Counted from the stretch's first letter, positions 27,637 to 64,000 are shown. The stretch: DNA of 64,000 nt from Thalia democratica (GCA_965202585.1 OZ241828.1:45384001-45448000); one strand, 5' to 3'. Notes: generated from the sequence alone by a model not told the origin. Numbers and translations: made by a program.

Positions 27637-30600
27637 ATGGCACATAGTGCCCTATTTTTGGCTATCATTCTGATGAGCAGCACCTCTCCCCACGGGTAAA
27701 TTCTTACTTCTGATAAGTATTTTATAAAGTTATCAATAATTAACCTACTTTTTTATTTAAAAACAACTGTAAAACTTTCTTTTAGTAACAATTGAAAAAG
27801 GTAATATCGAAATTTTGTTTTAATTGAAAATTAAAAAATCTTAATTATACACATACAAAGAAACAAACAATCAAGGTTTTTATTATTTATTGTAGTTTCT
27901 AAACACAAAACAATGTTTTTCCTTTTAAGGCTTTCCAGTTGTAATTAAAATCTTGTAATTAAAATTAAAATTTATTCTGTTGCATGAATTTAACTGTAGA
28001 AATTTAGTTTACAACTGGACCTATACGGCGTTTTTTTAAAATCTGTTAATTAAAGTCTCAGGAAAAAAAAAATTGAAAAATTACTAAACTTTGCTAGAGT
28101 TAAAATAAAGTATTTACAAGTTTTAAAAACCTAAAAATAATTTTAGTAAAATGCTATATAAATATAATGTTTAAAATAAACTTATTAATTTAAAATTTTG
28201 TTAAAGTGGTATGTTAACTTGTACTTTTTTACAGTGCTGCTTCTCTTGACTGTAAGTTTAAGTATTTTGTATTTATATTTGGTTAAATTTAGTATTTAAG
28301 ATTTTAATAATTTTCGTTGAAAATTTATCATCAGACAGTCATATGAATTCTTAAATTATTTGTTTTTAATAAAAACTATTCCGTTACGAAAACATTGAAC
28401 AATAAATTTAAATTAAAAATTTTCTTAGGCTAGTTTTTTAAAAACACAGCTTAAATATGACATACTTGAAAAAATTGTTTGTAAATATTTAACTTTAAAA
28501 TATTACTTAAGGTACTTTTTGTTCATTATTCAATAAAAAAATATTTTGTCTGCAATACTTATCGCTAATATAAATTATTTTAAATAGCTACGATGCCGGA
28601 CTTCCCTTCCCCTGACAGTTAGTTTAAGAAGTTTTGTATAATAAACACTTCTATTTATTAATAAAGTTTTTAAAGTTAAGCGTTTACCAAAGTTTTAAAA
28701 CAACTAAAATAAATTTTAAGTGAAGATTGGTCAGCATCAGTAAAAAGTAATACTTTAAAATTAAACAATATTTGTTTCAATCGAAATTTATTTTTAGTGT
28801 CTATTGACCCGCCTCTTAACGGAGAAGCAATCTGCAATGTTGTTAATAACATAAAGTAAGCTACATATTTGTTTCTAAAAATTACTACTAAAAAACTTAT
28901 GTTATTATAACCTACTACAAAAACTAGATTTTGCTTTGAAACTATTTTTTGTTTTATTAGTGATTGAAGACTATTATCAAAAAAACTTAATAATTTAGGA
29001 CTTGTACTGCCAAATGCAAATCTGGATACAAGTTTGACAGACCAGAATCGCAGTTAGGTGACAAGCTTGTCAACGAGTATGTTGACGGTCAATGGTCACT
29101 TGGCGAACCAAAGTTTCCGAATTGCAAATGTTTGTGTGTTTTAATTGTATAAACTTAATGTTTTTATAGACAACTGTTTTTCAAGACTTTAACTATTTTT
29201 TTACGTAATACGAAAGTTTTTTTTCATAAAATTTTTGAGCTTTGTAAATTAATACTTTTACTTTTCCACCTATACGTTTAATTGACTAAATTTAGCAAAA
29301 GTAGGCCAACTTATATTAAGATGTAATATTAAGTTGATATAAATCTTTTTTACCTCAATTCTATAAATAACCAAGGAGCTTAAACAAAAAATTTTTGCAA
29401 AGTATTTAAAATTGGTTCTATTGTTGGCTTTTACAAGTAAGTATGCAAAACAAATTATCAATAAAAACAAATTCTTTAAAATTTTCAAAAAGCTAATTTC
29501 TTTTTGAAATAATGATACATAAATTTATACTCTAAAGATTTTTTTTTAGGCAAATGACACTTTGATTACTTTGTTACTTAAAACACTTTAGTGGTCTTAT
29601 GTGAGGCCAGAGCACCGGTAAACGGAAAGGTGTCATGCGAACCAAATGGCGAGTTCACGTTGTGCTCATTGGTATGTGATGAAGGTTTTCGAACATCTCA
29701 CACACATCTCTACATGTGCAATATGAAAACAGGCGAATGGGCTCCAAAACTTCCGGAAGATAACACTTTCGGAGAATGTTTAACGGGAACTGAAAAGTAA
29801 TTAGACATTGTTTTTGTAAATTTAAATTTAGCTTACCAGTTAACTTTTTTTGAAGCTTATCATTATTTTAAAAGTTAAATTCAAAGACAGTGCAATTTGT
29901 AAAAGTATTATCTCTTACTTTATTATATGGAAATTATTAAGATAACAAAAAAAAAAAGGTATCTATAATCTAGGCAAAAGTTCTCACTATTTTCATTTGT
30001 TGAAATATGTAATTTTTAATCATTGCCATGGTTTTTAACAGCTGTTTGAATATTGATGCACCAGAGAATGGGTACATTATCTGTGACCACACAGATGGTG
30101 AGCACAGATGTACACCATCATGTCGATCTGGATATGCACTGACTGTAGCACCACCTAACGGATATTTTATTTGCCAACAAGGGCAATGGGATCCACAAGA
30201 ACTGGCAGTTTGTTCACGTACGTTATTATTAGTTTTTGTTCGAAAACTGCATTTATAATCACACCTTTTAATAAACCGCTGTTTAGGTTATTTATTAAAC
30301 AGTTTTTTTTTGTTGTGGTAAGTTTTTCAGATAGTTGGACTTTGCTTTATCTTTTAATATGAAGTAGTTGTTGTAATTGCCATTATTTACTAATATAAAG
30401 TTTCACATTTGATTGTTATGTTAATGTAGTTTTAATTAGGCTAAATTTAGTAGTTTTATTAAATGTTAAATGCGTATGATACAATAAAAATTAGCAATTA
30501 TTAATAGAACCTTTTATTTAATACTTAGTTGACAAACTAAAAAGTACGAAAGCTTGATTTATCTAGATAAATTGATGATTTTTTACTAACAATCTTAGGT

Positions 30601-63600: not shown

Positions 63601-64000
63601 GAGGAGACTACTACGGCAAGGGCGGAAAGCAAGGTATGATTGTTGTCGGAGGTGCCGATGTTGACGGTAAGGCCCACGCTGACGGCGAGACCGGATACGG
63701 CAAGGGCATGTACTACGGTCAACCATCCGGCATGATGTGGCCAGGAATGGACGGAAAGATCCACTCTGATGCCGACGTCAACGCTCTCACCGACGGAACC
63801 AAGATCATCTTCGGTGATGACAGCGACAAGGACGGCTCATACCCATACGGTACATTCAAGGCAACTCATGACGCTAAGGCTGCTTCAGACGCCGAAGCCT
63901 ACGCTCCATTCGATGCCCACGGTGACTTCAAGGGAGGAGACTACTACGGCAAGGGCGGAAAGCAAGGTATGATTGTTGTCGGAGGTGCCGATGTTGACGG
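27637..64000 (+). CDS. Giant secreted gel-forming-mucin/vWF-family protein with a novel 111-aa repeat domain (3'-incomplete, >=6,720 aa)
   Basis: Exons (all GT-AG, all phases compatible): 27637-27695, 28235-28251, 28798-28855, 28999-29129, 29592-29796, 30042-30217, 31069-31312, 31695-31905, 32126-32261, 32316-32582, 32716-32947, 33043-33231, 33508-33664, 33999-34183, 34285-34409, 36011-36178, 36263-36399, 38297-38403, 42418-42562, 42799-42950, 43166-43472, 43542-43775, 43831-43947, 44016-44187, 44311-44456, 44547-44668, 44734-44816, 46115-46210, 46446-46675, 46763-50436, 50652-51278, 52748->64000 (20,162 nt). N-terminus [23 protein letters not shown] is a signal peptide. Confidence 0.9.
28798..30217 (+). 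CDS. Three sushi/CCP-like modules (exons 3-6)
   Basis: Pattern C...P.NG...C......C...C..G(Y/F)......C..G.W.....C in [13 protein letters not shown]..., [14 protein letters not shown]... and a 4-Cys first copy. Confidence 0.65.
31069..33110 (+). CDS. D1 assembly: VWD-C8-TIL-E
   Basis: [25 protein letters not shown]; KGLCGVY; [10 protein letters not shown]...[21 protein letters not shown]; CGSSCPKTC...[10 protein letters not shown]. Confidence 0.9.
33043..42950 (+). CDS. D2 assembly and D' (TIL-E)
   Basis: [24 protein letters not shown]; RGMCGNFN; QCMDDVC...[15 protein letters not shown]; CANACGSSC...CVPGCTCP; then [10 protein letters not shown]...[10 protein letters not shown]. Confidence 0.9.
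34909..35648. mobile_element. Intronic foldback element, ~290-bp arms
   Basis: 34909-~35197 is the reverse complement of ~35363-35648 (CTATTTTTGCTTAAG...GGTAAGTGAAGAG / CTCTTCACTTACC...CTTAAGCAAAAATAG). Confidence 0.8.
37451..38012. mobile_element. Two hAT-type MITE copies in inverted orientation, abutting
   Basis: CAGGGATTCCCAAAC...TTTGGGAAACCCTA (37451-37741) with flanks TTCTAAAC/CTCTAGAC, then CAGGGCTTCCCAAAGTGGG at 37757 whose interior is the reverse complement of the first copy. Confidence 0.7.
39416..39621. repeat. Intronic imperfect inverted repeat, ~85-bp arms
   Basis: GAAGATTACTGTATT...GTGAACTTGTTTCACTA...AAACACTTAA vs TTAAGCGTTTG...TAGTGAAACAAGTTCAC...ATACAGTATACTTC. Confidence 0.7.
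40390..40660 (-). mobile_element. Solo Penelope-like pseudo-LTR relic around the hammerhead
   Basis: GC-richer island in an AT-rich intron carrying a PLE-type minimal hammerhead; boundaries approximate. Confidence 0.5.
40453..40494 (-). ncRNA. Canonical minimal type I hammerhead ribozyme
   Basis: Minus strand GCCUGC-CUGAUGA-GUCC(UACAA)GGAC-GAAAC-CG-GUC^GUAGGU: intact core, 4-bp stem II, 6-bp stem I, palindromic ACCGGU in place of stem III. Cut site between 40459 and 40458. Confidence 0.9.
43166..44816 (+). CDS. D3 assembly: VWD-C8-TIL-E
   Basis: [14 protein letters not shown]; WDKGT; EGLCGDFD; [32 protein letters not shown], closely matching the gel-forming mucin C8-3 motif. Confidence 0.92.
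46763..53060 (+). CDS. Six Cys-rich VWC-like cassettes separated by Ser/Gly-rich spacers
   Basis: Repeated C.D..G..R.(Y/F)G..W....C..C.C...C...C...EE....CC...CD...C...C...CC..YEC.C...C...CP.G...CC...C starting at 47504, 48122, 49097, 49724, 50345 and 51178. Confidence 0.85.
52748..64000 (+). CDS. Last visible exon: >=11.25-kb open frame not listed in the ORF track
   Basis: Phase-2 join VVK/CSLERC. The codon frame starting at 52749 runs through the sixth cassette into the repeat array; I found no stop and no indel (333-bp spacing holds throughout). Confidence 0.9.
53160..64000 (+). repeat. 333-bp coding tandem repeat, 32.5 copies in window
   Basis: Consensus [111 protein letters not shown]; about 56% GC by hand count of one unit; copies differ only by scattered substitutions. 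Confidence 0.97.

Follow-up and report, generated by a model that had tools for sequence, protein, structure and literature searches.

A giant VWF/gel-forming-mucin scaffold gene in Thalia democratica with a new 111-residue repeat as its central module

In von Willebrand factor (VWF) and the mucins, the D1-D3 region drives head-to-head disulfide multimerisation and the cystine knot (CK) domains dimerise. Giant secreted proteins of another kind are known from Chironomus, whose MDa-sized Balbiani ring proteins are encoded in very long tandem-repeat exons and made in bulk for a feeding or housing structure. Among tunicates, VWFL1/2 of Ciona are said to be vWF-like genes of the endostyle, reportedly described by Sasaki and co-workers in 2003. 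The VWF/mucin scaffold swaps its central module, which is a chitin-binding domain (CBD) in Ci-GFM1, VWA in VWF and a Pro/Thr/Ser-rich (PTS) domain in MUC2 (PMC6109156), and tunicates have expanded multi-VWD families, with 17 multi-VWD proteins each in Ciona and Oikopleura (PMC4948705). In Oikopleura, cells of the endostyle strongly express a vWF-like gene (10.64898/2026.03.31.715263). Here we describe a gene of Thalia democratica that begins at position 27637 of a 64,000-nucleotide stretch of DNA, hereafter the window (GCA_965202585.1 OZ241828.1:45384001-45448000; G000:C4:45384001-45448000 in the 802-Mb assembly that was searched). It encodes a VWF/gel-forming-mucin scaffold with a new central module, a long array of 111-residue units in which a protein polyanion replaces the glycan brush.

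The locus was extended with 80 kb of downstream DNA, with window numbering continued past 64000, and the gene model was built with a splice-aware dynamic programme, then adjusted manually at places where joining exons directly recovers TIL and E motifs. The resulting splice model has 47 exons spread over ~113 kb, with GT..AG boundaries at all introns, and a coding sequence of 90,969 nt for 30,323 aa; a mass of 3.19 MDa was computed on an earlier 49-exon version of 30,465 aa. The pI is 4.4 and the unit is strongly acidic. At ~91 kb, the coding sequence is among the longest in animals and close to that of titin, and the array exons are single exons as long as 27.5 and 50.8 kb. A first-pass annotation of the window had described at least 6,720 aa and at least 32 units, both still open at the window edge; the reading frame does continue, and the 32.6 units in the window are part of ~230 overall. 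Its 32 phase-consistent exons come close to the 31 that the splice model places up to and including the first array exon. Following the N-terminal domains, the order is 81 units, an intron, a degenerate unit, ~149 units, cassette 7 and the C-terminal domains (Table 1).

Domain assignments at the N-terminus confirm the D1-D2-D'-D3 head proposed from the window. Pfam, run on exon-sized stop-free pieces of the plus strand, identified three VWD domains (31011-32200, 33017-34184 and 43146-43784), two C8 domains (32300-32605 and 35974-36225) and four TIL domains (32703-32969, 36229-36417, 42799-43038 and 44301-44789), the TIL of D' (42799-43038) scoring 19.8 bits, below the Pfam cut-off. Against the PDB, the VWD3 exon matched the D3 positions of MUC5AC, MUC5B, MUC2 and VWF (E 1e-27 to 6e-20). 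A third C8 at 44016-44186 was recognised by its PDB matches to the C8-3 of MUC2 and MUC5AC (E 1.3e-24 for MUC2), with every Cys aligned, including the D3-type extra Cys cluster, of which MUC2's own C8-1 and C8-2 lack one Cys. This cluster presumably contains an intermolecular Cys (MUC2 Cys1088 / VWF Cys1099 region). The region of MUC2 Cys1088 has a role in mucin multimerisation (PMC6739602). The three sushi-like modules of the first-pass annotation stand in part: one (29582-29797) has a Pfam Sushi match just under the cut-off (E 9e-4, 19.9 bits versus 20.7), and the other two are recognised by their Cys/Trp pattern. No GDPH motif occurs in any of the VWD domains, and among the exon pieces scanned Pfam returned no VWA and no cellulose- or chitin-binding domain.

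Beyond D3 lie the six Cys-rich cassettes that had already been described 5' of the array, located at model residues 1920, 2126, 2451, 2660, 2867 and 3073 and separated by short linkers with 11% Ser; a further copy, cassette 7, directly follows array 2. The cassettes are VWC-like (Pfam E 1.5e-5, 25.6 bits versus a 27.6-bit cut-off) or without a match, and the cassette exons contain no Pfam match to CysD (Mucin2_WxxW). The VWD4 and cystine knot that had been raised as possible C-terminal domains are both encoded downstream. Cassette 7 is followed by two VWC domains, a VWD of D4 type (L013:3422-4106 in the downstream DNA, by Pfam), more Cys modules, a double VWC and the cystine knot. The C-terminal VWC matches reach E 4.7e-7 and 1.7e-12, and the knot corresponds to Cys_knot PF00007 (E 2.5e-11). 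In comparison with the VWF CK dimer structure 4NT5 (E 5e-12), 11 of 11 Cys align, including the CSCC motif and the last Cys.

The protein thus shares with the gel-forming mucins MUC2, MUC5AC and MUC5B the D1-D2-D'-D3 head, a giant-exon repeat combined with Cys-rich modules, D4, VWC and the cystine knot. Unlike them, it has no PTS domain or GDPH motif, CysD was not found, its interspersed modules are VWC-like cassettes, it carries N-terminal sushi-like modules and it is 2-6 times their length. With VWF it has in common the D assemblies, D4, VWC and a CK, to which the C-terminus matches best within the PDB, but no VWA was found and the central region is a repeat of 25,678 aa. Ci-GFM1 of Ciona and other tunicate multi-VWD proteins belong to the same scaffold family with lineage-specific central modules (PMC6109156, PMC4948705); in contrast to the present protein, Ci-GFM1 has 2880 aa, chitin-binding and FN2 domains and a PTS of 50 aa, and no counterpart of the 111-aa unit is described there. 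Balbiani ring proteins differ in having unrelated sequence, Cys-containing repeats and neither VWD nor CK.

Within the window, Tandem Repeats Finder (TRF) reports a single array from 53151 to the window end, with a period of 333 bp, 32.6 copies, 98% matches and no indels, and a GC content of 0.56 versus 0.21-0.39 in the flanks. One plus-strand frame is open throughout; all others, those of the minus strand included, are interrupted in each unit. This frame extends from 52734, within cassette 6, to 80315 (9194 aa) and is followed by an AT-rich gap; a second open frame of 16,957 aa (83533-134403) carries the repeat unbroken into Cys-rich sequence. Every one of the 81 + ~149 units is exactly 333 bp long and free of stops, and together they make up 84% of each chain. 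The unit consists of Gly (19.9%), Asp (14.9%), Ala (11.1%), Lys (9.0%), Tyr (7.2%) and Pro (3.6%), among others, and lacks Cys and Arg. Ser (4.2%) and Thr (4.5%) sum to 8.7%, in agreement with the earlier estimate of about 8% and with the view that this is not a PTS repeat, and a single N-glycosylation sequon occurs in the 25,678 aa of the array. Each unit in Thalia democratica includes one DxDxDG-type loop. An internal half-unit duplication was unsupported (z 1.5), and a hidden Markov model of the unit found nothing significant in the non-array parts of the gene. Smith-Waterman alignment against shuffled sequences recovered degenerate unit copies before cassette 1 (z 8.2, 0/200 shuffles) and after cassette 7 (z 4.8) and none in the short linkers; another degenerate unit heads the second array exon (z 29).

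Transcription was assessed with RNA runs from two studies (runs X1, X2 and X3), which carry the label marine plankton or marine metagenome. The first-pass annotation had left room for transcripts ending before 53160, for a misassembled join and for an array removed by splicing. A 6601-nt RNA contig of X1 covers 47500-50432, 50648-51278 and 52748-53194, passing through two splices into the first unit, and its joints recur in other runs (50432/50648 in X3, 51278/52748 in X2). A 423-nt RNA contig joins 80283 to 83549 across the inter-array intron (3265 bp, GT..AG), giving three RNA-confirmed introns, two in the window and one downstream. RNA depth over the inter-array intron is 0 in X1 and X2 and, with the exception of one bin (L006:7492-7632), in X3; the DNA run covers the intron. 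At the other end of array 2, loose ends of RNA contigs from X1 and X2 match the sequence from 133447 onward exactly, where the last unit passes into cassette 7. As for copy number, words common to all units have a depth of 22,555 in the DNA run versus 98.8 for single-copy exons, corresponding to ~228 copies and agreeing with the ~230 assembled. In the RNA, the depth of repeat words is hundreds-fold that of unique exons. Cassette 6 lies in the same exon and frame as array 1, and cassette 7 in those of array 2, which makes the parts a single gene; two other taxa show the same junction of cassettes and array in their metagenome contigs. As assembled, the gene is real and transcribed.

Variation among the units is structured by array. 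The units of array 1 form an A-type subfamily, apart from a few of B type close to the 3' end, and show a 13-unit higher-order period; array 2 is homogeneous B type, and 13 nucleotide sites distinguish the two. The 120 distinct variants comprise 36 synonymous and 84 nonsynonymous changes, against an expected synonymous share of 21.5%, and none creates a stop (~5 expected). The frame is evidently protected, since neither a stop nor an indel occurs across 76.6 kb. Codon use in the array is extreme (AAG 0.99, TAC 1.0, TTC 1.0, CCA 1.0, no NCG), with a GC content at third codon positions (GC3) of 0.60 versus 0.21 in the other exons. This is the kind of pattern that translational selection, rather than plain GC enrichment, leaves, and the array codons look like those of highly expressed genes. 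The switch is abrupt and falls inside one exon (53100-53500), with GC3 at 0.21 in the cassette part versus 0.60 in the array, where AAG, TAC, TTC, AAC, CAC and CCA are nearly the sole codons for their residues.

Searches for relatives placed the unit outside described families. Pfam gave sub-threshold chance matches, the ESM Atlas no usable match, and all scored matches in the organism's own genome (150 of 234 candidates) fall in this locus. An exhaustive phmmer search of the unit over 1.84 billion (1.84e9) representative proteins returned nine matches: six near-identical fragments, two relatives at 34-40% identity and one unrelated low-complexity protein. By annotation, seven are unannotated marine fragments, one is a hypothetical protein of a Bacteroidota metagenome-assembled genome (MAG) and one is the low-complexity protein; they come from assemblies of Tara metatranscriptomes, an ENA metagenome contig and a 641-nt Bacteroidota-MAG contig. 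The Bacteroidota entry (P0008; NCBI MEL6706587.1) is a fragment of this eukaryotic repeat family, and its presence in a bacterial MAG is very likely due to contamination in binning. A profile search found 15 proteins, including further relatives at 31-42% identity from marine metatranscriptomes, which have an identical 111-aa period, align without gaps and conserve aromatic, Pro, Gly and Asp positions. On these sequence comparisons, the unit can be regarded as a new repeat family with a conserved period, so far confined to marine plankton data. The possibility of a described orthologue with the same repeat and known function was also pursued, and Pfam, the Atlas, protein searches and the literature yielded no described orthologue or family with this repeat.

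Relatives of the whole gene extend this picture. The same gene, at 89% nucleotide identity, is present on a 10-kb metagenome contig (L015) with its array collapsed to one unit, and homologues of the large cassette exon at 36-43% identity occur on long ENA contigs. In another taxon, a Tara metagenome scaffold (L025) bears VWD, VWD and C8 exons, a cassette exon at 43% identity and a last cassette that continues into that taxon's own 111-aa repeat. In a related taxon (L027), the cassettes flank a different repeat of 207 aa, Gly/Ala/Asp-rich and with a GC content of 0.58, in ~7 copies at L027:20578-24834; the repeat between cassettes therefore varies between lineages. A second giant gene lies 1.07 Mb downstream on the minus strand (G000:C4:46509001-46529000; loci L028 and L029). 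It has a stop-free frame of 19,830 aa, a D3-type C8/TIL exon and one cassette like those described here, and its array alternates two Gly/Asp/Tyr/Ala-rich unit types of ~100 aa (GC 0.53). Homology of the 111-aa unit to the repeat of this paralogue (z 2.1) or to the 207-aa repeat (z 3.4) was not supported, the similarity being mostly compositional.

Taken as a whole, we consider it reasonably probable (about 0.6) that this is a pelagic tunicate gene for a disulfide-polymerised secreted protein on the VWF/mucin scaffold, serving as a structural fibre or gel of the extracellular matrix, with the endostylar feeding net as first choice and the tunic or house as second. The origin agrees with the plankton labels of the RNA runs and with an intact COX1 (contig C1833), which reads properly only with AGA/AGG as Gly and TGA as Trp, the tunicate mitochondrial code. 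A search with this COX1 returned unnamed marine sequences at 86-92% identity, and no named sequence exceeded ~52%. By homology, monomers would pair tail to tail via the C-terminal cystine knot, and dimers would be linked head to head through D3, with the help of D1-D2, into long disulfide-bonded polymers; since the domains that drive multimerisation are present, a linear disulfide polymer is the product that homology leads one to expect. Because the unit has no Cys, nearly no sequons and few Ser/Thr, the bulk of such a polymer would be protein and not glycan. Its Asp side chains would supply the polyanion that sialylated or sulfated sugars give in mucins and would probably bind Ca2+, and the many Tyr would offer potential cross-linking sites. 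An assembly of mucin machinery with different bulk chemistry had been suggested from the window; the domains at both ends support the architecture, and the material itself we infer.

A structural fibre or gel of this kind would be produced in very large amounts, and the amount of repeat and the codon bias point to very high output. The mucous net of the endostyle, the tunic and the house are the obvious high-output secretions of tunicates. The endostyle vWF-like genes of tunicates, whose secreted vWF-like products are strongly expressed in that mucus-secreting organ, represent the most plausible functional class; a giant Gly/Asp/Tyr array is not reported for them. In ascidians, the mesh of the endostylar mucous net goes down to 0.2 x 0.5 um (PMC8790370). 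With their mucous nets and houses, pelagic tunicates clear ocean water in large volumes, and our literature searches found no paper on the molecular make-up of pelagic tunicate filters and nothing specific on VWFL and the endostyle or on salp mucous-net proteins. If the proposed reading is right, the gene yields a concrete main-fibre candidate for these filters, as well as a natural experiment in which the polymerisation machinery of mucins and VWF operates with a protein polyanion instead of a glycan brush.

A more specific version of this proposal is put forward tentatively. Together with the paralogue of the 19,830-aa frame, the protein might form the filament of the tunicate feeding filter, a nearly glycan-free 'protein mucin'. 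The sub-micron rectangular mesh would then be set by the length of the monomer (230 beads, of the order of 0.5-1 um), and the Asp-flanked Tyr would be substrates of endostylar peroxidase (dityrosine or iodotyrosine). The Asp-flanked, Tyr-rich motifs invite tests as candidate sites for peroxidase-driven cross-linking or iodination. Filter secretion would then be linked to the iodine chemistry of the thyroid-homologous organ, and Ca2+-controlled gel expansion and Tyr cross-linking or iodination in the endostyle are the links that we suggest. Since an ascidian is already reported to possess a thyroglobulin (Tg)-like precursor of thyroid hormone (PMC12992692), serving as a hormone precursor is unlikely to be the principal function of this protein.

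Several points weigh against the feeding-net fibre or limit it. The net is favoured over other secretions from the biology of the lineage. The DxDxDG loop is not kept in distant relatives, so that Ca2+ binding there is not a family feature, and AlphaFold2 produced no confident model, with a predicted local distance difference test (pLDDT) score of 31.8 for three units alone and 27.8 for two units with a 16-row alignment of relatives. In the polymerisation head, the second intermolecular Cys of D3 (TIL-3; MUC2 Cys1130 / VWF Cys1142) could not be placed: the TIL-3 exon has 8 Cys by eye versus 9 in VWF TIL-3, and no PDB alignment was informative. The signal peptide of exon 1 was likewise judged by eye. 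At the level of the array, selection acts weakly on single units, and contigs cannot show one mRNA with all 230 units. Each unit moreover contains CAAG/GTATGA, a near-copy of the true donor CAAG/GTATGT, and the resulting 225 in-frame decoy donors of near-consensus sequence could give rise to shorter isoforms.

Among other explanations, a tunic matrix protein, or a house protein if the organism were a larvacean, is possible but doubtful. Here the epidermis or oikoplastic epithelium would secrete the protein into transparent gel or filter meshes together with cellulose. The molecular evidence is identical to that for the feeding net, VWD-containing house proteins of the oik30 family exist in Oikopleura (PMC3390340), the tunic or house forms the largest extracellular mass in pelagic tunicates, and a second giant paralogue is what a multi-component matrix would be expected to have. 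However, house proteins are highly glycosylated (10.64898/2026.03.31.715263), unlike a core so poor in Ser, Thr and sequons, and the binding domains for cellulose or chitin were missing from the pieces scanned. An analogue of the gut-lining, peritrophic-type barrier mucins is improbable: the scaffold is that of Ci-GFM1 in the Ciona gut envelope membrane (PMC6109156), but the present protein is ten times as long, has no chitin-binding domain in the same pieces and shows an array codon optimisation that points to very high output. Still less probable is another secreted material, such as a coat around eggs or embryos, a Ca2+ store, or an adhesive with the Lys/Tyr/Gly chemistry of 3,4-dihydroxyphenylalanine (DOPA) glues. 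The content of Lys (9%), Tyr (7%), Gly (20%) and Asp (15%) and the loop in each unit would suit such uses, but the data give no pointer to gonad or attachment organs, and the acidity of the unit is unlike that of basic DOPA glues. That the array length stems from assembly, or that the arrays are mostly spliced out and leave a protein of a few thousand residues, is highly improbable, for although the array shrinks to a single unit in short-read assemblies of relatives, every unit has a decoy donor and contigs cannot span the array, the DNA depth, the excess of repeat words in RNA, the lack of stops and indels and a codon bias that makes sense only if the array is translated all argue against it.

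Table 1. Features of the giant gene, with positions counted from the first letter of the window and continued into the downstream DNA.
Feature	Coordinates	Strand	Evidence
Exon 1: start codon and short hydrophobic signal-peptide-like leader, then GTAAAT donor	27637-27695	+	Direct reading, splice model; signal peptide by eye
Exons 2-5: three sushi/CCP-like Cys modules	28721-30217	+	Pfam for one, Cys/Trp pattern for two
Exons 6-10: D1 assembly (VWD1, C8-1, TIL-1)	31069-32947	+	Pfam VWD 2.7e-12, C8 4.3e-16, TIL 2e-9
Exons 11-17: D2 assembly (VWD2, C8-2, TIL-2, E2 start)	33043-38403	+	Pfam VWD 8e-8 and 4e-8, C8 9.9e-14, TIL 6.5e-9
E2 end and D' (TIL'/E')	42418-42950	+	Pfam TIL E 9e-4, under cut-off
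D3 assembly: VWD3, C8-3 with D3-type extra Cys cluster, TIL-3/E3	43166-44816	+	Pfam VWD 4e-13, TIL 3.9e-8; PDB matches
Extra TIL-like Cys module 3' of D3	46446-46675	+	Pfam TIL E 0.002, under cut-off
Large exon: relic of ~1.5 units, cassettes 1-4, start of cassette 5, Ser/Gly/Ala-rich linkers	46763-50436	+	Stop-free 1234-aa frame; RNA contigs of X1, X2, X3
Intron, RNA-confirmed	50437-50651	+	Joint 50432/50648, GT..AG with cut 4 bases rightward; X1 and X3
Exon: remainder of cassette 5, linker, start of cassette 6	50652-51278	+	RNA contigs of X1, X2, X3; cassette pattern
Intron, RNA-confirmed	51279-52747	+	Joint 51278/52748, GT..AG; X1 and X2
Start of giant array exon: remainder of cassette 6, AT-rich degenerate edge of first unit	52748-53150	+	Open frame of the array; X1 contig 52748-53194
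Array 1, first 32.6 of 81 units of 333 bp / 111 aa	53151-64000	+	TRF; exon continues to 80283 (extended coordinates)
Beyond window: 3265-bp intron, degenerate unit, ~149 units to 133446, cassette 7	Extended coordinates	+	Downstream DNA, RNA joint
15 C-terminal exons ending in cystine knot; TAA stop after 140691	Extended coordinates	+	Splice model, Pfam

Two parts of the model, from 36400 to 42400 and at 46115-46210, leave the choice of exons uncertain. The join of 36399 to 38297 gives an intact end of the D2 TIL, and the join 38403/42418 a typical Cys motif of the E module. Three small candidate exons (37748-37858, 40011-40077 and 41812-41969) were dropped, direct joins restoring canonical TIL and E motifs, and 44457-44546, initially kept as coding, was removed as a retained intron on the same grounds.

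Neither an Rfam nor a tRNA scan of the window returned a match. Within the intron at 51279-52747, an ~85-bp dispersed element (~52188-52280) is probably a short non-autonomous transposon; the genome contains over 1600 candidate copies of it, with 78-90% identity (38 scored). Upstream of the gene, retroelement-like open reading frames (ORFs) occupy a GC-richer block at 2369-5625, with a Pro/Ser/Gln-rich product that has internal repeats, and a retroviral-type aspartic-protease-like ORF lies at 4319-4891. The same short tandem repeat, reading ...RCVTLARRVTLAQRQNDTVRHFGT..., is found at 16857-17450 (+) and 20791-21141 (-), in opposite orientations ~3.4 kb apart, as an inverted pair of satellite-like arrays. 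Elsewhere in the assembly, several COX1-like fragments with many stops occur on a nuclear chromosome (G000:C4:56842736-56945724) and on C757, and these look like nuclear copies of mitochondrial DNA.

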